A program made the translations under genes and the position numbers. Of a DNA stretch of 64,000 bases, positions 5,060 to 59,617 are shown piece after piece. Numbering within the stretch: the stretch's first letter is position 1; every line of letters starts with the position of its first letter. The notes beneath the pieces were generated by a model. It did no database searches. It saw nothing but the letters and a program-made list of their open reading frames with translations, and had not been told where the DNA came from. The stretch lies in sequence record NC_041917.1. One strand, written 5' to 3'.

Positions 5060-5464
5060 ATGTTTTTACATGTACGCGGTTTTACTGGTGGCGGTTTCTG
5101 CTTTATGATTGATGATAAAGCGGTATCAGTACAAGAAGCATTGATCCAGAATGGTGGACGTTTCCACAAGGCAACAATAAACGCATTGAACAGAAAGAAC
5201 CTTTTTAATGAGTCAGATTTAAAAGCCTTTGAAGAACTGGCAGAATCATTACATAAAGGTTTAACTCCTTGCTCCATTCGTCAAATCCTGCGTAATGATT
5301 ACGGGATCGACGTGTTAAAAACTGATTACCTTATGTTATCATCTTCTCAGGTTGAAGATCTTAAAACTGTTTATAAGTACGCACGTTATAAGGTTCCTAC
5401 TGGTTACGTATTGAAACATTCGCCAATGTACTACTTTTACAGGTATTTGAGCAACGTAAAATAA
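5060..5464 (+). CDS. hypothetical early protein
   Basis: GAGG SD; start moved to ATG 5060. Confidence 0.75.
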   Translation: MFLHVRGFTGGGFCFMIDDKAVSVQEALIQNGGRFHKATINALNRKNLFNESDLKAFEELAESLHKGLTPCSIRQILRNDYGIDVLKTDYLMLSSSQVEDLKTVYKYARYKVPTGYVLKHSPMYYFYRYLSNVK

Positions 5465-5519
5465 TTTAAAAAAGGGGTTGACTACGGTCAGCCCTTTGTA
5501 GTACTATAGTATCACTCCA

Positions 5520-5546
5520 GCGAAATGGACTAACCCTATAGGGTGC
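5520..5546 (+). repeat. promoter-locked element E5
   Basis: GCGAAAT-GGACTA-ACCCTATAGGGTGC; 5514-5592 identical to 15714-15792. Confidence 0.95.
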
Positions 5547-5653
5547 AGTACTGTACCTATAATAAAAATAATTAAAATTCAAATGAAAAAGTACTTGCAT
5601 TAAGTATTGAGTCATGTATAATCATTATATCGAAAGCAAACGAGGGTTTAACG

Positions 5654-5830
5654 ATGGATCATTTAATCGCATTACTTAATGCCTTTTGTATTAAACATGG
5701 GTTAGTACCTGCTAGTGCCGATGAAATGCTAATCGAGTATTTGGGTACTGAAAATCCAGATCCTGCAATTGTTTCATGGTTACAAGCTTATATTGTACTG
5801 TGGGACTGTACAAGTGATTTAGGTTTATAA
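5654..5830 (+). CDS. small hypothetical protein (58 aa)
   Basis: GAGG SD, own promoter. Confidence 0.65.
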   Translation: MDHLIALLNAFCIKHGLVPASADEMLIEYLGTENPDPAIVSWLQAYIVLWDCTSDLGL

Positions 5831-5902
5831 TTAAAATAGTACTTGCAATAATATGTGAGTACTGTATAATTCTTTATATCGAAAACAAACGAGGATTTTT
5901 AA

Positions 5903-6331
5903 ATGAGAACATGTAAAGAGTGTGGTAATGATTGCAAGTTAGATGTAAATGAAATCGTTAACCATTATAACGAAGATGGGAAGATTGATTTTGATTTAGA
6001 TGCGGATCATGTTGCAATTCCTGAATTAACTGACGCCGAAAGTAATATGCAAAATCCAGTACTACAAACGGCATTCAATTTTTCCGGTGATGTACCTTGC
6101 ATTAACTACGGGTTCAATTCTGGCGGTTATGAAAAATTCCAGTACTTTATTTGTGCTGATGGTGGTTGTTTAGGGATCGGGACTGTAATTAATGAGTTCC
6201 ATAAAGTGAACTTTAATGATCCTGATGATAAGCAATGGTATATCGTAGGGGTTGAAGTTAATTACGAAAATACCGAACTGGTAGACGATCACACAGGGGA
6301 TTATATACCAGCAGCGTACAGCGAAGACTAA
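5903..6331 (+). CDS. conserved phage hypothetical protein
   Basis: GAGGA SD; DGGCL..VNYENTEL.DDHTG.YIPAAY pattern familiar from phage hypotheticals. Confidence 0.8.
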   Translation: MRTCKECGNDCKLDVNEIVNHYNEDGKIDFDLDADHVAIPELTDAESNMQNPVLQTAFNFSGDVPCINYGFNSGGYEKFQYFICADGGCLGIGTVINEFHKVNFNDPDDKQWYIVGVEVNYENTELVDDHTGDYIPAAYSED

Positions 6332-6371
6332 ACAAAAGCAACGGGGATCTATGATCCCCTTTTGAGGTTAT

Positions 6372-6635
6372 ATGAATTTACATTATTGTACCAGAAAATT
6401 AGTTGTTGCTTTTGATTGTAGTTCTGATAAAATACATTGTGTAATATACAGAAAGGGAACACCACGCACAGATCACTGGAAAGTACTGCAATCCTATACA
6501 ATGCAACGTAAAGGGTTTAAGCACCTTGATAGCAGGACACAAAAGGCATGTTTACGGCAAGTACTTAAAGTTATGCGTAATCGTATTACACAGGCGTTAC
6601 ATGTTGCATTAACTACCAAGGATATGATAGAATGA
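6372..6635 (+). CDS. hypothetical protein
   Basis: GAGG SD. Confidence 0.7.
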   Translation: MNLHYCTRKLVVAFDCSSDKIHCVIYRKGTPRTDHWKVLQSYTMQRKGFKHLDSRTQKACLRQVLKVMRNRITQALHVALTTKDMIE

Positions 6636-6799
6636 AATATGTAATCTATTATGATCGCAGTACTAAAAGCTGGTGGGGGTACTGGATTGATGAAAATGAA
6701 AATCAGTTAGGTGAAGCTGTTTTTGAATATCAAAAAGAAGATTGCCTGATACTCTTAGGAGAAGTCAAGGAAAATCGTCGGAATTTAATTCAAAAATAA
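6632..6799 (+). CDS. small hypothetical protein (55 aa)
   Basis: ATGA overlap with upstream stop. Confidence 0.6.
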   Translation: MKYVIYYDRSTKSWWGYWIDENENQLGEAVFEYQKEDCLILLGEVKENRRNLIQK

Positions 6800-6853
6800 A
6801 TGAAAAAAGTACTTGCATTCATGTGAGTACTTTTATATAATACTTATATCGAA

Positions 6854-6880
6854 GCGAAATTCGAATTACCCACAGGGTGC
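6854..6880 (+). repeat. promoter-locked element E6
   Basis: GCGAAAT-TCGAATT-ACCCACAGGGTGC; TTGCAT 6813-17-TATAAT 6836. Confidence 0.9.
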
Positions 6881-7028
6881 GGAAGTATATCTATGAAAAA
6901 AAGAATTAAAATTTAAATGAAAAAGTACTTGCATTAGATCGTGGGTATGGTATTATAACTACATCGAGAGGCGGCAATCTCTTGATAATAAAATTAATCA
7001 AATAACTTTTAAGAGAGAGAGAAAGAAA

Positions 7029-7337
7029 ATGTCTAAAGCAAACGCGATAGTATCAATGATCCCTGCAATCCTTCCAATCGGTACTGTAGTAGTTCACAAT
7101 TACGGTGAGTTCACTCATGGTACTATTGTATCTCATGTTGCTGGTGATATGTATGAAGTATTCTTTCCTGTTGAGAACTGCCCACAAACTGCAAAGTACT
7201 TGACAGATGTTAATTCTCGTGTACGTAAAATTCGCTTAAATGCTGGTTTCTTTATCAGCCGCTTTAACTCACTTGCAGCAGTTAAGATCGCACAGAAGAA
7301 GTATAAAAAATCTGGTCTAAAACTGGAAAGCATTTAA
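7029..7337 (+). CDS. hypothetical protein, paralogue of 13449-13781
   Basis: Shared GT.VVHNY..F.HGTI and GFF.S motifs. Confidence 0.85.
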   Translation: MSKANAIVSMIPAILPIGTVVVHNYGEFTHGTIVSHVAGDMYEVFFPVENCPQTAKYLTDVNSRVRKIRLNAGFFISRFNSLAAVKIAQKKYKKSGLKLESI

Positions 7338-7417
7338 TTGTAAAATCATTCACAAAAGTACTTTACTTATATCGTAGAGTACTTTATAATGAAGTTACTA
7401 AGTAAGAGGAAGCAAAT

Positions 7418-7486
7418 ATGAAACGCTGGCATGAAGTACTGTTGTTTGTTTTGTTTATTCTAGTAACTTGTGTAAATTTTAATTGA
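7418..7486 (+). CDS. 22-aa hydrophobic peptide
   Basis: Own promoter, AAGAGG SD; MKRWHEVLLFVLFILVTCVNFN. Confidence 0.5.
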   Translation: MKRWHEVLLFVLFILVTCVNFN

Positions 7487-7496
7487 GAGGTTCAAA

Positions 7497-7736
7497 ATGT
7501 CTTTATATAAAGTAGTAGTGAACTGTATTAGTGTTGGTATGGCTGGATCTCATACTCTGTTAGTATCTGGCGACTTCCCGCATATTAACGAGGCAAGAAT
7601 AGGGATCAATGAGTGGGTGGCTAATGAGTACGCCGGACGCTTAGATGTTAACGTAACATTTTTGAATCATTCAGATCAAATTTATGTTACTGATTTGAAA
7701 TCATCAGATTATGATAAAGTTATTATAATGCGTTAA
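7497..7736 (+). CDS. hypothetical protein
   Basis: GAGG SD. Confidence 0.7.
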   Translation: MSLYKVVVNCISVGMAGSHTLLVSGDFPHINEARIGINEWVANEYAGRLDVNVTFLNHSDQIYVTDLKSSDYDKVIIMR

Positions 7737-7790
7737 CTATATTATCAAAAGTACTTGCAAATAGAAAGCGAGTACTTTATAATGAAGTTA
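7733..7790 (+). promoter_or_regulatory. duplicated early promoter bracketed by two AGTACT sites
   Basis: 58 nt identical to 8362-8419; TTGCAA 7755-17-TATAAT 7778. Confidence 0.9.
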
Positions 7791-7812
7791 CTTTAAGTAA
7801 GAGGATATTGAA

Positions 7813-8061
7813 ATGGAAAATGAAAACATCTTTACAGTTTATGCTTCTGATGCAATAACTCATATTCATCTCATTGATGAAATTGTAAAAAATACGGATG
7901 TAAAAGTATTAGCAGGTAATCCTGATGGATTATACTTTGATAATCCAATGCCGTCTATTACTTACAGTACCAAATTGAGTTATGAAGATTTTAAGAAAGT
8001 ACTGGACAAATCAACCTCATTAGAGTATCATCTTTGTATAGAAGAAGATTGGTATTGTTAA
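7813..8061 (+). CDS. hypothetical protein
   Basis: Own promoter, GAGGA SD. Confidence 0.75.
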   Translation: MENENIFTVYASDAITHIHLIDEIVKNTDVKVLAGNPDGLYFDNPMPSITYSTKLSYEDFKKVLDKSTSLEYHLCIEEDWYC

Positions 8062-8086
8062 TTAACTTTTAAGTGAGATATAATTA

Positions 8087-8365
8087 ATGAAAGCATACGA
8101 ACATAAGACCATGACAGTTGCGGATCTTATTGCTAAACTGGAAAGTACTTATCCGAACAAAAACGCCGTTATCGTTGCGGATCTATGGGACGAAGACGAT
8201 ATTCGTGAAGTAGCACAGGATATTAATATTCAGCTCGACCGCGAAGAATGTCGAGTAGTAGCGGCTTATCTGGATGATACCGCAGATAAGACAAATGGTT
8301 ATAATGATGATAACATTAAGTTAGCCATTTATCAAGTTATTAATTTGGGGCTTATTAATCCTTAA
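8087..8365 (+). CDS. hypothetical protein
   Basis: ORF track, GAG SD. Confidence 0.75.
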   Translation: MKAYEHKTMTVADLIAKLESTYPNKNAVIVADLWDEDDIREVAQDINIQLDREECRVVAAYLDDTADKTNGYNDDNIKLAIYQVINLGLINP

Positions 8366-8455
8366 CTATATTATCAAAAGTACTTGCAAATAGAAAGCGA
8401 GTACTTTATAATGAAGTTATTGAATCGGTACTTATTAACTAAGAGGAAGTATATC

Positions 8456-8659
8456 ATGGCTCAAAAAGATCGTCGTTACTCAATCGCAGCGGAGTTTACT
8501 GGTCACATCTCAGGTAAGAAGCGTCAAGTACTGCGTTTCTGTGGGGCGTGGGTATCGGATCATGCGACACGTCACGAAGCCGAACAAGAGATCGTGAAGT
8601 GGAAAGCCAGCGGTGAAGTGCCAGCGGTTCAATCACAGCGTGTGCTGGTGGAAGCGTAA
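8456..8659 (+). CDS. small conserved phage protein
   Basis: GAGGA SD; start moved to ATG 8456; YSIAAEFTG..VLRFCG. Confidence 0.75.
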   Translation: MAQKDRRYSIAAEFTGHISGKKRQVLRFCGAWVSDHATRHEAEQEIVKWKASGEVPAVQSQRVLVEA

Positions 8660-8735
8660 CACATTATCAAAAGTACTTGCAAACAGAAAGCGAGTACTTT
8701 ATAATGGTTACACTATTAAGCGAGAGGATAACAAA

Positions 8736-9035
8736 ATGAAATTTACAGTACAAGTCGAAGGGGTTGATCTAGTATCAGTCGTCGCAGCATTACAAGAAGC
8801 CGCTAGACTTATCGAAGATGGGAATACTTCTGGATTTGATCGCAATGAAGATGGGAATTTTTATTTTGTAGAAGGCGATCAGCACTTGTTTAGTACTGGT
8901 GAATCATGTACAATGCATACAGCCGTTTGTGAAATGGTGGAGCGTTTACATCAAGGCAATCATTATGATAATGATGAAGAACGCCAAGCTGATATTGATG
9001 TGATGAATAAATTACAAAAAGTAACAGGACGCTAA
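8736..9035 (+). CDS. hypothetical protein
   Basis: GAGAGG SD; start moved to ATG 8736. Confidence 0.75.
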   Translation: MKFTVQVEGVDLVSVVAALQEAARLIEDGNTSGFDRNEDGNFYFVEGDQHLFSTGESCTMHTAVCEMVERLHQGNHYDNDEERQADIDVMNKLQKVTGR

Positions 9036-9040
9036 ACAAC

Positions 9041-9070
9041 AAGTACTGGTGAAATATCCAGTACTGTTTT
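9041..9070 (+). terminator. intrinsic terminator
   Basis: AGTACTGG-TGAAATAT-CCAGTACT followed by T run. Confidence 0.7.
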
Positions 9071-9104
9071 TATATACAGCTTATTCTTTAATAGATACAT
9101 TTTC

Positions 9105-9131
9105 GCACCCTGTGGGTCAAAGACATTTCGC
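9105..9131 (-). repeat. promoter-locked element E7
   Basis: Minus strand GCGAAAT-GTCTTTG-ACCCACAGGGTGC; TTGACA(9173-9168)-17-TATTAT(9150-9145). Confidence 0.9.
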
Positions 9132-9261
9132 TGTCTATGAAGTAATAATACAGTACTTTGGTAATGGTGTCAAGGATTAAATTAAAATTAAAACGAAAAA
9201 AAGCACTTGTAATTATCATGAAGTACTGTATAATCTTTTATATCGAAACGGGAGAATTGAA

Positions 9262-9564
9262 ATGAGATTTATCAAATACAGTTTGATAGGGTATTTTGGT
9301 ATGGCATTACTTTGTACTGTACTTGTTATATGCATTACCGTATTAGATTATTTCGATGGTGATTTTTACGTTAAGTATATCTATGGTGGTTCACATTTCC
9401 GTTATGTAATTGAATTTGCATTACCTGCGATATTTAAAAGTAGCTTTTGGGGCGTACCGTGTGCTATACTGATAGCATGGAAAGTTGATCGTATCAAGGC
9501 GAATGATATGAATAACCATAGTATTAAAGAGCATTTTGGTATTGACTACCCTAAGAAGGATTGA
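9262..9564 (+). CDS. putative membrane protein
   Basis: Two hydrophobic segments; own promoter. Confidence 0.7.
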   Translation: MRFIKYSLIGYFGMALLCTVLVICITVLDYFDGDFYVKYIYGGSHFRYVIEFALPAIFKSSFWGVPCAILIAWKVDRIKANDMNNHSIKEHFGIDYPKKD

Positions 9565-9568
9565 TATA

Positions 9569-9814
9569 ATGAGTACCACATTGAAAGCACTGGTGTCATT
9601 ATTATTCTCAGTACTGTTAACATTCTTATTGTTAACGGAGGCAAGAGATGGTATTGTATGGCGGTTAACAATGTTAGCATATGAAATTGAAGATACTTGG
9701 TATTCTTTCTTGACATATGGTAGCAATGGAGTGTATGCTATATTTCTAGCTGGTATACTTTACATTTTATTTTGTTTAATGTTTGCTATGATGGGAGATA
9801 GTCATGAGAGTTGA
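9569..9814 (+). CDS. putative membrane protein
   Basis: Two hydrophobic segments; AAGGA SD. Confidence 0.65.
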   Translation: MSTTLKALVSLLFSVLLTFLLLTEARDGIVWRLTMLAYEIEDTWYSFLTYGSNGVYAIFLAGILYILFCLMFAMMGDSHES

Positions 9815-9968
9815 GCCAATCAGTAGAATTATTAAGTTAGCAAGTAGTACTGTCAAGAATGAATATCCAAAAAATATTGTTGACAGTACTAGCAGTACGG
9901 TGGTACATTTAGGTCAAGCAACAACGGGTTGCTATGATAAACGTGGTTTAATAAAATGAGGATTGAAA

Positions 9969-38441: not shown

Positions 38442-39355
38442 CAGTAACAGTAGGACTTCCAGGATGTGGTAAAACCACTTGGGCGAACGAGCAAGTACGT
38501 ACCGCACGGTCTAAGACTGTGAACGTAAATCTTGATGACCTTCGCCAAACAATGGCTGGTTCCCATAGTAACTACAAGTTCCGTAAAGACAACGAACAGT
38601 ACGTGCAAGACGCACAGTACAGTGCAGCGGAACATGCAGCAGCTAATAACTGGAACATCATTGTATCCGACACGAACTTGAATCCTACAGTTCGTGGAAA
38701 GTGGAAAGAATTTGCCAAAAAGCATAATTACACTTATAAAGAACAAAGCTTCTTAGAAGAATTCAAGAAAGATAAAACTTTCTCTCATGATTTCTTTGCA
38801 GTTAAAGGTTTTGTTAAACAGTGTAAAGACCGCAACCTTATGCGTGAGAAATCTGTACCAGAAGATGTAATTGATGGTATGGCTGAAAAGTACTTCTATA
38901 GTGCAATGAAGGTTCAGACACCAACTTTACAAGATTTGGAAGAAGCGATCATTGTAGATATTGATGGTACTCTTGCACATATGGACGGTAAACGTGGCCC
39001 ATACGAAGAAAATAAAGTACTTGTAGATTCACCAGATCCTGAAGTAATTTTGTCAGTACTGGCAGAAAAGAACTTTCTCGGTCGTACAGTGATCATCATG
39101 AGTGGTCGTCATGAAACCTGTAAAGAAGATACTGAAGCATGGTTGGATAAGTATGCTATTCCATACGATCATATCTTCATGCGTGGTGCTGAAGATAGCC
39201 GCTCGGACGACATTGTGAAGTACGAACTTTACATGGAAAATGTACACAACAAATTCAAAGTTGTTAAAGTCTTTGATGATCGCGATCAGGTGGTCGTAAT
39301 GTGGCGGCGTTTGTTGGGTCTTAAAGTTTATCAGGTTGGTTTTGGTAACTTCTAA
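38429..39355 (+). CDS. pseT: polynucleotide 5-kinase/3-phosphatase
   Basis: GLPGCGKTTW P-loop plus DIDGTLA HAD motif, VFDDRDQVV. Confidence 0.95.
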   Translation: MPTLTVTVGLPGCGKTTWANEQVRTARSKTVNVNLDDLRQTMAGSHSNYKFRKDNEQYVQDAQYSAAEHAAANNWNIIVSDTNLNPTVRGKWKEFAKKHNYTYKEQSFLEEFKKDKTFSHDFFAVKGFVKQCKDRNLMREKSVPEDVIDGMAEKYFYSAMKVQTPTLQDLEEAIIVDIDGTLAHMDGKRGPYEENKVLVDSPDPEVILSVLAEKNFLGRTVIIMSGRHETCKEDTEAWLDKYAIPYDHIFMRGAEDSRSDDIVKYELYMENVHNKFKVVKVFDDRDQVVVMWRRLLGLKVYQVGFGNF

Positions 39356-39409
39356 TATAAAGGGGATAGAAATATCCCCTATTTTAATTAAGATAAAGGA
39401 GATTGTACT

Positions 39410-39607
39410 ATGTCAGTTAGTGTTATATATAGAATTAAAAAACTAAATCATGTATATGATTATGATATTATTATCCATGAAGATAATTATTATTTTGAAA
39501 AAGGTTCTACCCTTGTTCATGGTGGTGGTATTAGAGAAGTACTTGAACTAAAATATCCAACTGATCAGTTCAGAATTAATGTAGAAATTGCAATCCATAA
39601 GGATTAA
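39410..39607 (+). CDS. hypothetical protein
   Basis: AGGAG SD. Confidence 0.65.
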   Translation: MSVSVIYRIKKLNHVYDYDIIIHEDNYYFEKGSTLVHGGGIREVLELKYPTDQFRINVEIAIHKD

Positions 39608-53521: not shown

Positions 53522-53712
53522 AATTAATCTCCTAGAGAATCATTTATATAATAATATTTATCCAGCCAAGGACTAATATATATTTATTAGGATTTCCTTG
53601 ACATAAATGTGAAGATTTGATATACTCTTTTGGTCTTAGAGACAATTAAATCTGAAGTATTTACTGAAAAAAAGTTGAAACATCAGAAAAAAATCTGTTA
53701 TAATATAAACAT

Positions 53713-53757
53713 CAAAGCGATGTAGCTTTGGCAACAATGACTAAGGGAGTCTTAGAA
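53713..53757 (+). promoter_or_regulatory. double-hairpin leader of NAD gene 1
   Basis: CAAAGC-GATGTA-GCTTTG and CTAAG-GGAGT-CTTAG with SD in loop; promoter TTGAAA 53675/TATAAT 53699. Confidence 0.8.
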
Positions 53758-54825
53758 ATGAAAAATGAAAAAGTATATGTATATATTGGTCGCTTCCAAA
53801 TGGCACATAAAGGCCATGAGGAAACAATTAAACATGCACTAGAAAATGCAGACCGTTTGGTAATTCTTGTTGGTTCGTCTGACCTTGCACGTGATCCTAA
53901 AAATCCGTTCAGTTTCACAGAACGTCAACAGGTACTGGATGCTATGAGTACTCGTTTAGCACAAGAAGAATGGGCTAAAGGGCGTTCGGTTAAGATTAAC
54001 ATCTTACCAATCCACGATTACGTTTATAACAACAGCAAATGGTTAAAAGAAGTACATGAACAGGTTAAATCTGTAACTGTCAGTTCTGATATTACTATTA
54101 CTGGTTGTCAGAAAGAAGCTGACGAAAGTACTTTCTATTTGAACTTCTTTCCACAATGGAAACAGGATTTCATTGAAGAACTTAAAGTTGATGAAGCAAC
54201 TATCAACAGTACTGAGATTCGTAATCAATTCTTCAGTACTAAACAAGTTCCAACGATTCTTCCAGAAGAAACTCAAGAGTTCCTAGAGAAGTTCATGCAC
54301 ACTAAACCAATGGTGTTTGATAATTTGATTGGTGAATTTAACTTCATTAATCGTTATCGTTCTGAAATGATCGAAAAGTTACCATTTAAAACTATCCCAT
54401 TTATTACTGGTGATGCTTTGGTAATTTGTGCTGGTCATGTTCTATTGGTTAAACGCCGCACATTCCCAGGAAAAGGTCTATATGCACTTCCTGGTGGATT
54501 CTTCGATTCTGAACAAGATGGTGATCAAGTAGATGCCGCGATTCGTGAATTAAAAGAAGAAACCAAAATTGATGTTCCAGTAAAAGTACTTTATGGTTCT
54601 ATCCGTGAAAGTATGGAATTTGGTGATAAAAACCGTTCTCTACGCTGGCGTATCATTACTAAGTGTGCGTACATCCAACTTCAGGACAATACTTTACCAA
54701 AAGTAAAAGGTGCTGATGATGCTGAAAAAGCATTCTGGATGCCACTTGGTGATTTGGTTAACAACCGTGATAAATTCTTTGAAGACCATTTGAGTATCAT
54801 TGATACTTTCTTAGGTATTCTGTAA
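53758..54825 (+). CDS. nadM: bifunctional NMN adenylyltransferase/ADP-ribose NUDIX hydrolase
   Basis: GRFQMAHKGH, NPFSF.ER, INSTEIR; ALPGGF..AIRELKEET NUDIX box; start 53758. Confidence 0.93.
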   Translation: MKNEKVYVYIGRFQMAHKGHEETIKHALENADRLVILVGSSDLARDPKNPFSFTERQQVLDAMSTRLAQEEWAKGRSVKINILPIHDYVYNNSKWLKEVHEQVKSVTVSSDITITGCQKEADESTFYLNFFPQWKQDFIEELKVDEATINSTEIRNQFFSTKQVPTILPEETQEFLEKFMHTKPMVFDNLIGEFNFINRYRSEMIEKLPFKTIPFITGDALVICAGHVLLVKRRTFPGKGLYALPGGFFDSEQDGDQVDAAIRELKEETKIDVPVKVLYGSIRESMEFGDKNRSLRWRIITKCAYIQLQDNTLPKVKGADDAEKAFWMPLGDLVNNRDKFFEDHLSIIDTFLGIL

Positions 54826-54868
54826 GAAATATTGGAGTACTTCGGTACTCCATTTTAAGTGAGGTCTA

Positions 54869-55390
54869 ATGCTTTACTGTCAACCGAATAGTTTTTATGA
54901 TGAAATGATGTATGTATCAGAAAATAATGAGAGATTTTTAAAGAAACTCGCATTGACAGAATACAAAATACCTGATACAGTACTAAATCTTGAACCTATT
55001 GGATACCTAATAAAAATAGTTCTTACTGAACCAGATTTTTATGGCAATGATAAAATTATTGCATTACGAACTTTTGGTGTTAATGATTCATTAACAATGA
55101 CACCAAATTGTACTTATATGAGTGTTTATTATGCAATGATTGCAGAAGGTTCATTACTTATATCTAAACCAACCACTTCATATGTTTATATGAATGATGA
55201 AGGTGAAACGATATATAAGACTTCTGATGAGTATGGTGATGAATATCATTATCGAATAGAAGATATTGCAAAAAGTAAAAGTAATGATATATATGCATTA
55301 GATGCTTATGTATATTATAGCTCTAGATTATTTCGTCCAGATAATATCATGGCGAAAATACCAACATTTTTATTAAAAAACATGGCATAA
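54869..55390 (+). CDS. hypothetical protein inserted between NAD genes
   Basis: GAGG SD. Confidence 0.7.
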   Translation: MLYCQPNSFYDEMMYVSENNERFLKKLALTEYKIPDTVLNLEPIGYLIKIVLTEPDFYGNDKIIALRTFGVNDSLTMTPNCTYMSVYYAMIAEGSLLISKPTTSYVYMNDEGETIYKTSDEYGDEYHYRIEDIAKSKSNDIYALDAYVYYSSRLFRPDNIMAKIPTFLLKNMA

Positions 55391-55400
55391 GCCATCAACC

Positions 55401-55445
55401 TGAAAGCGTTGTAGCTTTCACACCTATACTAAGGGAGTCTTAGAT
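55401..55445 (+). promoter_or_regulatory. double-hairpin leader of NAD gene 2
   Basis: TGAAAGC-GTTGTA-GCTTTCA and CTAAG-GGAGT-CTTAG. Confidence 0.8.
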
Positions 55446-56924
55446 ATGAAAAACTTAAATGTAAACTTTATTCTTAATGTTGATTCTTACAAAACTGGTC
55501 ACGGTTTTATGATGAAAGATGGCGTTGTAGCTCTCGAATCAAACATCATTGCCCGTAAACCATCCAAATTCACTACACATGTTGTGATGATGGGTATTCA
55601 GTACTACCTTCAAGAGTACTTGGATATTGTTATCACTGTAGATGACATTGACGAAGCAGAACATGAAACAAACCAACGTGGTGATGATTTTGATCGCGGC
55701 TTTTGGGAGCATATTGTAGAAGTGCATGGTGGTAAAATTCCATTGCATATTCGTGCTATTCCAGAAGGTACATTGGTTCCTGTTGGTTGTCCTTTAGTAC
55801 GTTCTTTCAGTACTGATGAACGTGTAGCAGTTATTGCAAGCTACATTGAAACTCAGTTACAACGTGCAATTTGGTTCCCAACAACTGTTGCAAGTAATGC
55901 TCGTAGCATTAAAGAATTTTTAGCAGATACTATGGAACGTCATGCTGGTCATCGTTTTGTAGATTATCATCTTCATAACTTCGGGGATCGTGGTGCATCA
56001 AGTTTCGAATCAGCAATTCTTGCTGGTATGTCCCATTCAACGGTATTCAGTGGTTCTGATTGTTTATCTGCTAACCGTTACATCAAACATTACTATAATA
56101 CTGACAAAGCATATTTGACCAGTGTTACTGCAAGTGAACATAGTGCAACTTGTTCTAACTCTGATGCAGACAAACGTGATGACTTCAATATGGCAGTCAA
56201 AATGGTTCGTTTGTGGGAGAAGAAAGTTGACAAGTACATTGCAAATGGTTCTGTTGGTGTACCACCAATTGTTTCAGTAGTAATCGATACTTACGATGCG
56301 TACCGTTTCGTTCGTGATTATATCGGTACTCGGTTAAAAGCGACAATTGAAGAAATCGGGAAACGTTGCCCTGGTGCTAAACTTGTTATGCGTCCAGATA
56401 GTGGCGACCCAACAACTATGCCAATCGAAATCATCGAACTATTGATGGAAAAATTTGGTAGTACTGTAAATGCACAGGGATTCAAAGTACTTCCAGCATT
56501 TATCGGTGTTATCCAAGGTGATGGCATCAATGAAACCAGTATTCGTCAGATTGTTTCTAATCTAGATGACAAAAAACTTTCTATTGAAAACCTTGTTTTC
56601 GGTATGGGTGGTAAACTTGTTCATCCTGAAGCTGGTCGTGATACTTATTCTTTCGCAATGAAAGGATCTGCACAGCAACTTGAAGATGGTACTTGGGAAG
56701 ATTTATTCAAAGACCCAATTACCGATGTTGGTAAACGTTCTCTCCGTGGTCGTGTAACGACTTATGAATGCACCAATACTCACAAAATCATTGCTGAGCG
56801 AATTGAATTACAAGAAGTCAATCCATTCTTGAAAGATATGATGGTTGATATGTACATTGACGGTGTTATCATGAATCTTAGTACTTTTGATGAAGTACGG
56901 GAACGTGCTAATAAAGGTCTATAA
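55446..56924 (+). CDS. nadV: nicotinamide phosphoribosyltransferase
   Basis: DSYKTGH, LHNFGDRG, ASEHS, VIDTYD, RPDSGDP, IQGDG. Confidence 0.95.
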   Translation: MKNLNVNFILNVDSYKTGHGFMMKDGVVALESNIIARKPSKFTTHVVMMGIQYYLQEYLDIVITVDDIDEAEHETNQRGDDFDRGFWEHIVEVHGGKIPLHIRAIPEGTLVPVGCPLVRSFSTDERVAVIASYIETQLQRAIWFPTTVASNARSIKEFLADTMERHAGHRFVDYHLHNFGDRGASSFESAILAGMSHSTVFSGSDCLSANRYIKHYYNTDKAYLTSVTASEHSATCSNSDADKRDDFNMAVKMVRLWEKKVDKYIANGSVGVPPIVSVVIDTYDAYRFVRDYIGTRLKATIEEIGKRCPGAKLVMRPDSGDPTTMPIEIIELLMEKFGSTVNAQGFKVLPAFIGVIQGDGINETSIRQIVSNLDDKKLSIENLVFGMGGKLVHPEAGRDTYSFAMKGSAQQLEDGTWEDLFKDPITDVGKRSLRGRVTTYECTNTHKIIAERIELQEVNPFLKDMMVDMYIDGVIMNLSTFDEVRERANKGL

Positions 56925-57016
56925 TATTTTGGGGGCTTTTGCCCCCTTCTTTTTAAGTTAAATAGAGTTATTAAAAGACAAATATAATCAATTTTATAAT
57001 TGAAAATGAGAAAAAT

Positions 57017-57907: not shown

Positions 57908-58699
57908 ATGGAACTCGAAAGCTTTCTTTTAAATCGTGGACAACCACGCCTAGTATTTGCAACTGGTGCTGGATTATCAAAAGAATCTGGTATTAATACT
58001 TTCCGTGACGCTGACGATGAAGGCTTGTGGGATCAGTACAATGTGGATGAGATTTGTAATATTGCAACTTTCCATATTAATTATCAAAAAGTACATCATT
58101 TTTATAATATGCTTCGTGTAAATTTAGCAAATGTTGAACCAAATATTGGTCACCATATAATTGCTGAATACCAACAACTATATGGTCATGACCGTGTATT
58201 ACATATTACTGCTAATGTTGATGATTTGGCAGAACGTGCTGGTGGTACAGCTATGCATGTTCATGGTAAACTGACTGAAGTGGTAGAACCATATAGTACC
58301 AATAGTGAGGATTATGAAGTACTGACCGTTGGTTATGAGAATTTCACACCAACACCAGGAATTATTTCTAAACCAAATATTGTAATGTTTGGAGAAGGTT
58401 ACTGGTTCACCGATGGTGTACGTAAACCAATTTATGATGATCTATATCGAGTACTTGATAATTTAACGTCACAAGATACCGTTATTATTATTGGATCATC
58501 TGATACTGTAATTCCTTGGTCTGTGTATGTTGGTTTAGCTACACCTGCTGAGACACTTAATGTGAATCCAGAAGCCCATGAAAAAGATGATTACTTTACT
58601 TATAATATGTACCAACCAATAAGTAATTCAGTAACAATGATCGATCAGTACGTTCATTCCCGTATGGATCGTCCTGATTATAGCAATGAAGAATACTAA
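57908..58699 (+). CDS. Sir2/sirtuin-family NAD-dependent enzyme
   Basis: TGAGLSKESGINTFRD, TANVDDL.ERAG, HVHG, KPNIVMFGE. Confidence 0.9.
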   Translation: MELESFLLNRGQPRLVFATGAGLSKESGINTFRDADDEGLWDQYNVDEICNIATFHINYQKVHHFYNMLRVNLANVEPNIGHHIIAEYQQLYGHDRVLHITANVDDLAERAGGTAMHVHGKLTEVVEPYSTNSEDYEVLTVGYENFTPTPGIISKPNIVMFGEGYWFTDGVRKPIYDDLYRVLDNLTSQDTVIIIGSSDTVIPWSVYVGLATPAETLNVNPEAHEKDDYFTYNMYQPISNSVTMIDQYVHSRMDRPDYSNEEY

Positions 58700-58708
58700 G
58701 GTTATTTT

Positions 58709-59617
58709 ATGATAGGTTATGAAGAAATTGAATTTGGTACACGCTCAGATCGTTTTGACTGTGTATTCGTGTGGATTTACGCACGTAATTGCACCCCGTA
58801 TACTGGCTACCCTTATAATGACATTCCAAATGTTAGTCTAGTACTAACAGAATTGCGGTATGACGGTTTATTTGGAGCAGTGGGTGGAGCAGTAGAAGCA
58901 GATGATTTGAATCTAGAAGTTGCAGTACATCGTGAAGCAATGGAAGAAATTGCATATGATTTGCCTATTGAACGTTTAGAACCTCTGGCAACATATAAAA
59001 ATAAAATGAGTGGTTCTCATATTCATAGTTTCTCATTAGAAGTAACTTATGAAGAACTGCTTGAAATACGTAAGAACGCATACAACGGCGAGCATTTTAA
59101 TGCTGAGAATGCAGGTATTAATTTACTTCATATTTGTCGGTACTTAAAAGGTGGAAAAGTCGAATGTGGTTGGAATACAATTCTTGAACAGAATTTTGTT
59201 AGTACTTCTAAATTAGAACTAATGAAACTTGCTCGTACTAAAAATCTTGTCATTAATTATGTTGATGACAGTAAAGCACATACGGGTTCTTACAAGATGT
59301 TTATTGATGATCTTCGTGATGTTGAACAGTACTATCCAAATGAAGAATTTGTTGTGGTACGTACATATCAAGAAGCTGTTCAATATGTCAAAGAACATGG
59401 TATGCCATCTTTTGTGTCATTTGATCATGATTTGGGTGATACTGTTAACAAAGATGAAGAAACAGGATATACATTTGCTAAGTACTTAGTGGATTATATG
59501 ATGGATAATCGGATTGCAGTACCTTTCGAATATCATGTTCATAGTGCAAATCCAGTTGGTGCCATGAATATTATGTCCTATTTGGAAAACGCATTTAAAT
59601 TTATTCGGAGTTTATAA
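58709..59617 (+). CDS. NUDT16-like NUDIX fused to cyclic-phosphate-processing receiver domain
   Basis: LRYDGLFGAVGG..LE..VHREAMEEI; C-terminal FIDDLR..SFDHDLG..TGY..HSANPVG. Confidence 0.75.
   Translation: MIGYEEIEFGTRSDRFDCVFVWIYARNCTPYTGYPYNDIPNVSLVLTELRYDGLFGAVGGAVEADDLNLEVAVHREAMEEIAYDLPIERLEPLATYKNKMSGSHIHSFSLEVTYEELLEIRKNAYNGEHFNAENAGINLLHICRYLKGGKVECGWNTILEQNFVSTSKLELMKLARTKNLVINYVDDSKAHTGSYKMFIDDLRDVEQYYPNEEFVVVRTYQEAVQYVKEHGMPSFVSFDHDLGDTVNKDEETGYTFAKYLVDYMMDNRIAVPFEYHVHSANPVGAMNIMSYLENAFKFIRSL

Follow-up and report, generated by a model that had tools for sequence, protein, structure and literature searches.

Serratia phage BF carries, before each of its NAD-synthesis genes nadM-Nudix and nadV, its clade's version of a conserved family of 5'-leader RNAs found on NAD-synthesis cistrons. 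The family is widespread and was found neither in Rfam 15 nor in the literature that we searched. As far as can be judged from sequence, the leader probably sets the amount of NAD-synthesis enzymes that is made. Bacteria deplete NAD as a major strategy against phages, and phages are known to counter this with nadV together with nadM (NARP2). The NARP2 study reportedly described this phage NAD+ reconstitution pathway (Nampt and Nmnat) as a counter-defence; the nadV and nadM-Nudix genes of BF constitute the NARP2 enzyme pair, and the NARP2 work concerns the proteins.

The window analysed here comprises bases 1-64000 of Serratia phage BF (NC_041917.1). The NAD module and its candidate transcription signals are organised as follows.

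53598..53626, + strand: upstream sigma-70-like promoter TTGACA-17-TATACT, TG-extended (consensus match only, 11/12)
53675..53704, + strand: proximal sigma-70-like promoter TTGAAA-18-TATAAT (consensus scan)
53758..54825, + strand: nadM-Nudix (BF_0106), bifunctional NMN adenylyltransferase / ADP-ribose pyrophosphatase (annotation, homologues)
54833..54852, + strand: UUCG-tetraloop hairpin followed by UUUU, 3' of nadM, terminator-like or a stabiliser (terminator scan, folding)
54869..55390, + strand: BF_0107, hypothetical protein, without a leader copy (annotation, sequence)
55446..56924, + strand: nadV (BF_0108), nicotinamide phosphoribosyltransferase (annotation, alignment)
56931..56956, + strand: intrinsic terminator-like GGGGGC-UUUU-GCCCCC with a U-run, closing the module (terminator scan)

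Judging from the position of the proximal promoter, whose -10 box and distance to hairpin 1 are kept in relatives, the transcript would start about 2-3 nt 5' of hairpin 1 of the nadM copy. For the nadV copy, which is internal to the transcript, the consensus scan gave no promoter-like site directly 5' of hairpin 1, and a scan for intrinsic terminators or attenuators lists nothing on the + strand at either copy of hairpin 1; the terminator-like sites that it does give are 54833-54852 and 56931-56946. The UUCG hairpin behind nadM keeps its stem among relatives with a variable loop. The intervening BF_0107 lacks the element, as the initial annotation had stated, and shows no significant similarity to the motif-bearing small-ORF families of other phages.

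Both copies of the leader run from a stable hairpin through a G-poor linker into a weak Shine-Dalgarno (SD) hairpin, which is followed by 2 nt and the ATG.

53713..53730, + strand: hairpin 1, nadM copy, CAAAGC-GAUGUA-GCUUUG (MFE fold -7.8 kcal/mol, z -4.05)
53731..53740, + strand: linker, nadM copy, 10 nt, GCAACAATGA (sequence)
53741..53755, + strand: SD hairpin, nadM copy, CUAAG-GGAGU-CUUAG, CTAAGGGAGTCTTAG (fold -3.3 kcal/mol)
55401..55420, + strand: hairpin 1, nadV copy, UGAAAGC-GUUGUA-GCUUUCA (MFE fold -8.2 kcal/mol, z -4.39)
55421..55428, + strand: linker, nadV copy, 8 nt, CACCTATA (sequence)
55429..55443, + strand: SD hairpin, nadV copy, CUAAG-GGAGU-CUUAG, CTAAGGGAGTCTTAG (fold -3.3 kcal/mol; covariance model)

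In each case both hairpins belong to the minimum-free-energy fold, and the 16-mer core of hairpin 1 is present in two exact copies. The shared elements lie exactly where the initial annotation had placed them and with the sequence that it gave, including a closing pair that is inverted from C-G to G-C between the copies and a gap of 8-10 nt to the SD stem. Its reading of the SD as lying in the loop of a CTAAG/CTTAG stem holds for the stem; the SD itself is only half in the loop, with GAG in the loop and AAG(G) in the 5' arm. The SD spacing is optimal (first G at -10 or -11), and SD-in-hairpin sites as such are fairly common across BF (10/84 genes), a point against the operator reading favoured below. 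The further remark that the element was seen before no other gene was borne out by an exhaustive scan of the whole window with R2, a covariance model of the BF clade, with filters off, which found only these two copies, at 57.2 and 54.2 bits, and nothing above 16.4 bits elsewhere in the 64,000 nt. Beyond the window the statement has a blastn basis, the leader hitting exactly two places per BF-like genome. Two copies at most 1.7 kb apart in one genome could resemble each other by accident or result from a recent, functionless duplication at this locus; however, the 21-mer ACTAAGGGAGTCTTAGAWATG is present twice where 0.01 occurrences would be expected by chance, and compensatory conservation across genera, families and host domains refutes such an origin, to which we assign a negligible probability.

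Among the jumbo-phage relatives examined, the leader is kept before both genes in 11 out of 11, and the stems show compensatory changes. The BF-clade stems were judged from per-sequence folds and model R2; MAFFT misaligns the members of this clade that have a 5-nt loop. Phage OC carries the leader although its NadM and NadV share just 34% and 41% identity with the BF proteins. Variations on the theme include SD-stem arms that are swapped in RaK2 nadM (CTTAG...CTAAG) and G-U pairing in the GAP32 stem (GGT/GCC). Hairpin 1 is less constant in this clade: its loop drifts between close relatives (GAUGUA vs GCGGA), reads AUUUU in XaC1 nadM, and in the more distant jumbo phage Vibrio phage 2.275.O the hairpin is absent, with the SD hairpin kept. 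Such drift and loss suggest that in BF a sensing role of hairpin 1 may have weakened or disappeared.

In more than 100 uncultivated phages of IMG/VR we found leaders of the same design, their hairpin 1 capped by an R-N-N-G-A pentaloop that is AUAGA in most cases; the genes behind them are nadM, nadV, one nadA and small co-operonic ORFs. Such a leader also precedes nadM and nadV in Ruegeria phage RpAliso and, on the chromosome, the nadM and nadV genes of bacteria that include Moraxella, Acidithiobacillus and Marinicella. From phages of Alphaproteobacteria to Moraxella and Acidithiobacillus the AUAGA loop stays the same, with NadM and NadV diverging to ~35-40% identity. The BF copies share the layout of these NAD-module leaders, namely an R-N-N-G-(U)-A loop on hairpin 1, then a linker poor in G, and an SD hairpin whose end lies 0-3 nt from the start codon of an NAD-module cistron. 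Model R1, built from the non-BF clade only, detects BF-clade leaders weakly (E 0.002 to 4.4; E = 2 for BF nadV), and the BF nadM leader is not among the matches listed for it. One locus (L032) bridges the clades by joining an ATAGA loop to the exact BF SD hairpin, and this 15-mer precedes NadM or NadV in 24 out of 24 IMG/VR matches behind which a start codon opens an ORF longer than 80 aa. Contrary to what had been proposed, the element is thus not private to BF, the family extending to distant phages and bacterial chromosomes and to nadM, nadV, nadA and small co-operonic ORFs. The initial annotation had also named a lack of conservation in other phages as a ground for rejecting its proposal; decisively, a covarying element is present in many of them.

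Evidence for selection on the RNA structure comes from 118 distinct leaders, in which 86.6% of cells are paired as against 55.9% in shuffles, and in which the covariation score is 0.742 as against 0.189 (0 out of 500 shuffles reach 0.742), slid partners scoring no more than 0.10. Changes on both sides were seen at 14 of 15 pairs, an independent MAFFT/RNAalifold run found 8 of 9 pairs to be compensatory, and the SD helix is paired in 98.7%. G-U pairs are frequent, with 13 at one pair and 81 closing the SD hairpin. In the pentaloop, A1 (1.00), A3 (0.96), G4 (1.00) and A5 (1.00) are conserved, with stems that vary freely.

The family is tied closely to NAD synthesis, whether one starts from the genes, as above, or from the motif. 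Gene-agnostic pattern scans of IMG/VR samples gave at least 43 matches with both hairpins; among those listed, at least 28 stand before NadM or NadV, at least 5 before members of a family of small ORFs found at the head of nadM operons, at least 1 before NadA and at least 1 before a radical-SAM gene of the same module, and none of at least 195 listed hairpin-less matches stands before NadM or NadV. In 1.14 Mb of flanks reaching 10 kb to either side of nadM, 131 of 136 matches fall in the bins from -1 to +4 kb relative to nadM, the remaining five lying at -4, +5 and +8 kb. Of the motif genes, 127 of 128 have a matching SD hairpin, compared with 3.7% among 1307 neighbours. No proteins other than NadM and NadV turned up in all modules examined for the pair; for the motif-bearing small ORFs, Pfam and PHROG gave no function. 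The proposal of a dedicated translational control element thus stands in so far as the RNA structure is real, under selection, linked to NAD genes and placed over the SD; it falls as regards exclusivity to BF.

NAD regulons are controlled by repressors of the NrtR, NadR or NiaR type, and both elements are inverted repeats, which could serve as DNA palindromes for a dimeric factor of this kind. However, the arms covary freely around a conserved asymmetric centre, the G-U pairs and the swapped arms of RaK2 nadM speak against a DNA site, and all 136 matches lie on the coding strand at a position fixed relative to the start codon. An operator at the DNA level is therefore highly improbable.

Loop positions 2-3 and the loop length vary by clade (AUAGA, AGAGA, AGGGA, GNNGUA, GGGGU, GGAGU), and copies within one genome share the loop class or length (ATAGA with ATAGA; AGTGA or AGAGA with AGAGA; GNNGTA with GNNGTA; GCGAA with GCGGA; GGGGT with GGGGT). 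The appearance of GGA in some hairpin-1 loops (GUGGA, GCGGA, AGGGA, ACGGA), together with an SD hairpin (A-A/G-GGA-G in the loop) that resembles a CsrA site and a two-hairpin spacing that suits a CsrA dimer, brings to mind a global host regulator of the CsrA/RsmA type, bound to two GGA loops of which one covers the SD. Yet the main loops, AUAGA and AGAGA and, in BF, GAUGUA and GUUGUA, are all devoid of GGA and do not provide the two GGA loops; the hosts include Alphaproteobacteria, which generally lack CsrA, and a global regulator offers no reason for exclusivity to NAD genes. We consider this reading very unlikely, if slightly less so than a DNA operator.

The linker differs in length from member to member of the family and is rich in A, U and C, with 4% G as against a background of 22%. 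Hairpin 1 is stable and the SD hairpin weak, with median energies of -8.5 and -1.95 kcal/mol respectively. On inspection, no partner for the loop or the 3' arm of hairpin 1 was conserved in the linker, in the arms around the SD or in the opening codons, and no conserved pseudoknot or alternative pairing, on which most riboswitches depend, was found, a point against the mechanism favoured below. The inclusion of the SD and the SD-AUG spacer in hairpin 2 points to control of translation initiation, and a weak SD hairpin next to a stable hairpin 1 fits a structure that requires an effector. Copies within operons, as at BF nadV and bacterial nadV, indicate that the leader is not merely a protector of 5' ends, and its spread over bacteria as well as unrelated phages speaks against a factor particular to one host or one phage. 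We therefore regard an effector-controlled translational operator of some kind as the likely nature of the leader; that it regulates at all, in which direction and in answer to what, we infer from these features.

In the mechanism that we favour, hairpin 2, which pairs the 5' half of the SD with the SD-AUG spacer, is conserved but weak and would block the 30S subunit only if something stabilises it. Hairpin 1, with its stable stem and R-N-N-G-A pentaloop (a G-N-N-G-U-A hexaloop in BF), may act as the specificity or sensor element, connected to the SD hairpin by the flexible G-poor linker. NAD+, NMN or ADPR could then bridge both loops and keep the SD hairpin closed, giving feedback repression, which falling NAD, for example after an NAD-depleting defence, would release. 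A small molecule, specifically an NAD-family metabolite, is tentatively our first choice of effector, ahead of a protein encoded by the module, even though a pentaloop and a triloop make a very small sensor for an NAD pocket, which counts against a metabolite.

Traits generic to riboswitches are present, namely a covariation-supported structured 5'-leader element and an association with genes of one pathway (nadM, nadV, nadA) across distant taxa, in phages and Proteobacteria. With regard to an expression platform of mutually exclusive structures, the SD lies within hairpin 2, no conserved alternative pairing was found, and the SD hairpin is weak (-3.3 kcal/mol in BF). The known NAD+-I and NAD+-II riboswitches likewise act in cis from the leaders of NAD-metabolism genes; NAD+-I consists of two stem-loop domains in tandem and NAD+-II involves the SD, both as here, and the genes behind the present motif include one nadA. 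The motif differs from both in lacking a conserved internal bulge and a pseudoknot, and in its taxa and main genes (nadV, nadM). The Rfam model of NAD+-I (nadA motif) gave no match on the window at the gathering threshold or at E up to 10, nor did that of NAD+-II (pnuC motif) at E up to 10; neither model matched 20 phage and 15 bacterial loci (E up to 1) or the nadA-nadM-nadV contig (E up to 10). An NAD+-II-like pseudoknot was sought by inspecting the alignments, and neither loop has a conserved complement in the linker or start region. Rfam 15 as a whole returned nothing relevant for the BF window, 35 related loci and the nadA contig, and our literature search found no paper describing an RNA leader or riboswitch on nadV or nadM, nor a 'NAD-III' class.

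In layout, the leader comes close to guanidine-II (mini-ykkC), a translational control element with two small hairpins, conserved loops, a variable linker and a 3' hairpin over the SD. It shares with that class the two hairpins, the variable linker and the SD in the 3' hairpin. However, both mini-ykkC loops are ACGR and pair with each other, whereas the present loops, RNNGA or GNNGUA and G-GAG-U, are non-complementary, and the gene context is NAD synthesis rather than guanidine; ACGR tetraloops and an Rfam match to guanidine-II are both absent.

A translational operator bound by protein may also be considered, in which NadM-Nudix or NadV would bind the hairpin-1 loop and clamp the SD hairpin, perhaps modulated by NAD, NMN or ADPR, much as T4 gp43 or E. 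coli ThrRS control their own translation. An invariant loop on a short hairpin whose stem is free to vary is typical of operators that proteins bind; in those of Mu Com/mom, T4 gp43 and E. coli ThrRS, a protein-recognised hairpin lies 5' of structure at the ribosome-binding site, and binding sets ribosome access. NadM and NadV are both oligomeric nucleotide-binding enzymes and alone occur in all modules checked for both, the conserved weak SD hairpin needs a stabiliser, and loop classes that differ by clade and agree within a genome suit a co-evolving protein better than a fixed pocket. On the other hand, we know of no RNA-binding role for NadM or NadV, Pfam and PHROG scans gave no RNA-binding domain in the other motif-bearing ORFs, autoregulation by metabolic enzymes is rare in bacteria, and the AUAGA loop stays constant across hosts despite the divergence of both enzymes. 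The sequences are unrelated to the Mu Com, T4 gp43 and ThrRS operators, and the present motif differs in spanning many phage families and bacteria and in being repeated before each cistron, with a binding protein that is only a candidate. On balance, a module-encoded protein is possible but rather doubtful as the effector.

A lead in this direction is the loop in pyr mRNAs that binds PyrR, a metabolite-modulated RNA-binding protein related to phosphoribosyltransferases, which we take to be an AGAGA-type pentaloop closed by C-G and so to resemble a clade of the present family (..CC-AGAGA-GG..). However, the mechanism of PyrR is transcription attenuation, in Firmicutes, and NadV belongs to a different phosphoribosyltransferase class; the Rfam PyrR model had no match on three AGAGA-loop loci (L055, L056, L058), and a literature search on the resemblance gave unrelated papers only.

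The leader might instead be a constitutive expression cassette that senses nothing, in which hairpin 1 guards against decay from the 5' end or marks a boundary for processing, the linker is a standby site for ribosomes and the SD hairpin presents GAG in a loop for efficient and equal initiation. The nadM copy beginning 2-3 nt after the presumed transcript start, the G-poor linker, an SD hairpin too weak to block ribosomes alone, the SD-loop hairpins at other BF genes and the few phages that keep the genes with hairpin 1 missing or altered are all consistent with it. Such a cassette leaves unexplained the invariant loop across more than 100 lineages, the restriction to NAD genes with absence from about 1300 neighbouring genes, and the intra-operon copies far from any 5' end, and we regard it as unlikely, more so than a protein operator.

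Should the effector be a metabolite, the leader may represent a third, structurally distinct class of NAD-family riboswitch, a bipartite two-hairpin aptamer whose ligand, the dinucleotide or NMN or ADPR, bridges the RNNGA pentaloop and the SD triloop and thereby clamps the ribosome-binding site. Bacterial nadM-nadV operons and phage NARP2 genes would have this class in common. We advance this class with some reserve; if it is real, phages would raise NAD rebuilding exactly when a defence depletes NAD. To our knowledge, NAD riboswitches have so far been known in narrow lineages only. A dedicated RNA control shared with bacterial chromosomes would show that NAD counter-defence is regulated, and the leader would be a new candidate sensor of the NAD pathway, RNA- or protein-based, a question that can be addressed with an RNA of 55 nt. 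The motif is also a compact signature for finding NAD modules, and the unknown small ORFs under the same leader may belong to the NAD pathway.

Two further observations were made in BF. The GCTTT in the 3' arm of hairpin 1 and the TATACT in the nadV linker recall a T4-type MotA middle promoter; this candidate was rejected, the spacing being wrong, a start there removing the SD, and the arrangement not being conserved outside the clade. An extra R1 match at 39351-39412 (E 0.065) proved to be an ordinary intrinsic terminator (GGGGATAGAAATATCCCC with a T-run) followed by an SD.

Both leaders lie within a 3.6-kb stretch that matches Serratia phage BF (KY630187), a jumbo phage of the genus Eneladusvirus with a 357-kb genome, at 100% identity and equal coordinates. 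The matching leaders described in the initial annotation are confirmed: a stem-loop (hairpin 1), a linker and a second stem-loop holding the Shine-Dalgarno sequence (SD hairpin) precede both nadM-Nudix (NMN adenylyltransferase / ADP-ribose pyrophosphatase) and nadV (nicotinamide phosphoribosyltransferase).

Features of the BF locus
53713-53730, hairpin 1, nadM copy, CAAAGC-GATGTA-GCTTTG
53741-53755, SD hairpin CTAAGGGAGTCTTAG, nadM copy, ATG 2 nt further on
53758-54825, BF_0106, nadM-Nudix
54869-55390, BF_0107, hypothetical
55401-55420, hairpin 1, nadV copy, TGAAAGC-GTTGTA-GCTTTCA
55429-55443, SD hairpin CTAAGGGAGTCTTAG, nadV copy, ATG 2 nt further on
55446-56924, BF_0108, nadV
56931-56946, terminator-like hairpin after nadV

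The linkers measure 10 nt (nadM copy) and 8 nt (nadV copy), and the minimum-free-energy fold of the BF leaders consists of both hairpins, hairpin 1 being stable (-7.8 and -8.2 kcal/mol, z near -4) and the SD hairpin weak (-3.3 kcal/mol). A 21-mer of the leader occurs twice against a chance expectation of 0.01. R2, the covariance model built for the BF clade, run over the entire window with filters off, scored 57.2 and 54.2 bits at the two sites and at most 16.4 bits elsewhere. The last score belongs to ATGGCGTTGTAGCTCT within nadV (55515-55570, E 0.15), which resembles hairpin 1 with 3 mismatches and is probably a chance likeness or a leader remnant inside coding sequence. A TTGAAA-18-TATAAT promoter has its -10 box 9 nt ahead of the nadM copy, which would put the transcript start some 2-3 nt before that leader. 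The nadV copy starts 10 nt past the BF_0107 stop codon, and no promoter-like site was found directly upstream of it.

Both hairpins were found before both genes in all eleven related jumbo phages (fHe-Yen9-04, GAP32, CBB, XbC2, Kaldavass, Hallingskeid, EJP2, Munch, XaC1, RaK2 and uncultivated relatives); blastn placed the leader at exactly two sites in every BF-like genome, and R2 gave exactly two significant matches in each BF-clade locus of +/-10 kb. The hairpin-1 stems vary in sequence while their pairing is kept: CAAAGC/GCTTTG, GAAAGC/GCTTTC, CAAGGT/GCCTTG (with one G-U pair), CCAAC/GTTGG, AAGAAC/GTTCTT, CCGAT/GTCGG, GTAGC/GCTAC, AGAGAGT/GCTCTCT and AGAGAAC/GTTCTCT. SD hairpins occur as CTAAG..CTTAG, CTAA..TTAG and TACC..GGTA, and RaK2 nadM has the arms swapped (CTTAG..CTAAG).

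The leader had been regarded as private to the NAD-salvage genes of this phage; it proved to belong, as one variant, to a broad RNA motif found also in distant phages and on bacterial chromosomes. Ochrobactrum phage OC (Kyanoviridae), whose NadM and NadV are 34% and 41% identical to those of BF, carries the exact SD hairpin and an upstream hairpin before both genes. Wherever a start codon and an ORF longer than 80 aa came after CTAAGGGAGTCTTAG in IMG/VR, the gene was NadM or NadV (24/24); the remaining occurrences were scattered chance matches with no such ORF after them. Uncultivated phages with proteins 33-43% identical to those of BF show the same layout in their nadM/nadV loci, with a variable hairpin-1 stem on a pentaloop (mostly G-AUAGA-C, also AGAGA, AGUGA and ACAGA), a linker of 4-26 nt and an SD hairpin of 5-7 bp that has a G-GAG-U tip and stops 0-3 nt short of ATG. 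The BF hexaloop, G-N-N-G-U-A, can be read as an R-N-N-G-A loop with one inserted U, and bridging forms exist, namely BF-clade pentaloops (GUGGA, GCGGA, GCGAA, GUGUA) and contig L032, in which an ATAGA loop is combined with an SD hairpin identical to that of BF.

Of the cultured phages, Ruegeria phage RpAliso bears the canonical leader at both genes (E 1e-5), the loops of Ralstonia phage RSP15 are AGGGA and ACGGA, Stenotrophomonas phage DLP6 has an SD-like hairpin-1 loop (GGAGU), and KP27 and Aeh1 retain mainly the SD hairpin. In chromosomal nadM-nadV operons, nadV is preceded by the G-AUAGA-C hairpin and SD hairpin, and a second set lies roughly 1.2 kb further upstream, ahead of nadM (Moraxella boevrei, M. 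osloensis, Enhydrobacter, Marinicella, Acidithiobacillus, Microbulbifer sp. TYP-18, a Cellvibrionaceae MAG, Tepidiphilus, Thiorhodococcus, Thiocystis).

The covariance search at phage nadV/nadM bore out conservation in other phages, with compensatory changes in the stems. RNAalifold on a MAFFT alignment of 69 leaders found such changes in 8 of 9 pairs. Pairing occurs in 86.6% of cells across 118 distinct model-aligned leaders, against 55.9% in shuffles, and the covariation score stands at 0.742 compared with 0.189 (reached by 0/500 shuffles; slid partners <=0.10), with the SD helix 98.7% paired. Positions 1, 3, 4 and 5 of the hairpin-1 loop are 96-100% invariant, linker G content is 4% against 22% in surrounding DNA, and the first G of the SD lies at -10 or -11 relative to AUG.

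Specificity was assessed with R1, a covariance model built only from leaders outside the BF clade, on both strands of 69 loci (+/-10 kb round nadM, 1.14 Mb). All 136 matches lie on the coding strand, 131 of them in the bins from -1 to +4 kb as counted from nadM and the other five at -4, +5 and +8 kb. Of the next ORFs downstream, 58 are NadV, 46 NadM and 32 others; 23 of these others fall into three families of proteins of 105-125 aa directly 5' of nadM, and nadM then begins right at their 3' end, without its own leader. These families head nadM operons in uncultivated phages (e.g. L189:9648-10001, L192:9673-9996, L207:3621-3995) and gave no Pfam match and only 'unknown function' families in PHROG; one is Cys/His-rich (..C..NHTDGCGW.YE..H..C.C..) and, judged from its residues, could bind metal. 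In the window, R1 gave a weak false match to an intrinsic terminator at 39361-39384, GGGGATAGAAATATCCCC with a T-run, containing GATAGA by chance. On the uncultivated contig L116 (1-294), a partial tmRNA match lies just 5' of the nadM leader, scoring 53 bits with Rfam beta_tmRNA (below the gathering score of 84) and 47.6 bits with permuted tmRNA (just above 47).

An SD hairpin of matching geometry precedes 127 of 128 motif genes against 48 of 1307 other genes in the 69 loci. In the BF window, 10 of 84 genes (~12%) have the SD in a hairpin of 5 bp or more ending within 3 nt of the ATG (for example at 1786, 25643, 27950, 35428 and 45847), compared with 3.7% in the other phage clade, and BF may favour structured ribosome-binding sites generally; the full two-hairpin element occurs in BF only at the two NAD genes. 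Two gene-agnostic pattern scans of IMG/VR gave, among the matches listed, at least 43 with both hairpins: 28 before NadM or NadV, 5 before members of the Cys/His-rich small ORF family, 1 before a radical-SAM gene of the same module, 1 before quinolinate synthase (Pfam NadA, E 1e-83) and 8 doubtful. No NAD gene followed the hairpin-less matches listed (0/195). On a 49-kb viral contig (L373, reverse-complement 5293-9841), NadA, NadM, NadV and a radical-SAM protein are consecutive, and nadA, nadM and nadV each have their own leader copy. A similar radical-SAM gene bears the leader in two other loci, L178 and L415.

Neither Rfam 15 nor the searched literature yielded the broad motif, BF variant included. 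The leader matches no Rfam 15 family, including the models of the NAD riboswitches (nadA and pnuC motifs), mini-ykkC and PyrR, and no paper linking nadV or nadM to an RNA motif was found; NARP2 itself is reported as a pathway of proteins. With no U-run after the hairpins, the leader is not a terminator; nor is it a typical CsrA leader, because the main hairpin-1 loop lacks GGA. A DNA operator was rejected as well, given covarying arms, an asymmetric centre, frequent G-U pairs and the confinement of all matches to the coding strand.

These comparisons of sequence demonstrate a two-hairpin RNA under selection, sited on the ribosome-binding site of NAD-synthesis cistrons. That much of the proposed dedicated translational control of NAD salvage stands; control itself is the best available reading, and we infer that the leader acts on translation initiation. 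It is repeated ahead of each independently translated cistron, at 5' ends and inside operons; it might also be a constitutive stability and initiation cassette, which we consider improbable. Across the family, hairpin 1 has a median of -8.5 kcal/mol, compared with only -1.95 kcal/mol for the SD hairpin. Since the latter is too weak to act alone yet almost perfectly conserved, an effector may stabilise it, for which the invariant loop of the stable hairpin 1 would be the obvious recognition element. The motif moves with the NAD genes among unrelated phages and bacteria, and the effector should therefore be a universal pathway metabolite or a module-encoded protein. We tentatively favour a metabolite, because the regulon includes nadA and such a distribution is typical of riboswitches. 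The loops are clade-specific and matched between the copies of one genome, which is real evidence for a protein partner encoded in the module, a possibility that we rank slightly lower. As the hairpin-1 loop drifts in the BF clade, sensing may be altered or relaxed in BF itself.

Other structures and genes accompany the BF leaders. Immediately 3' of nadM, a terminator-like UUCG-tetraloop hairpin, GGAGTACTTCGGTACTCC, with a U-run (54833-54852) could be a terminator or mRNA stabiliser separating nadM from the next gene; its stem is retained in GAP32, CBB, Yen9-04, XbC2 and Kaldavass with differing loops. A small hairpin around the BF_0107 stop codon (55382-55395, ATGGC-ATAA-GCCAT), just 5' of the nadV leader, recurs at the same position in the related loci L002-L005, L007 and L010, as TTGG-TATAA(A/G)-CCAA in Yen9-04, GAP32, CBB and XbC2 and as TTGGCA-TAA-TGCCAA in XaC1. 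Because its stem varies in sequence yet remains paired, this hairpin may belong to the nadV leader of the BF clade as its third element. Further NAD-related genes, a Sir2-like gene and a second Nudix hydrolase (57908-59617), lie 1 kb 3' of nadV, without the leader.
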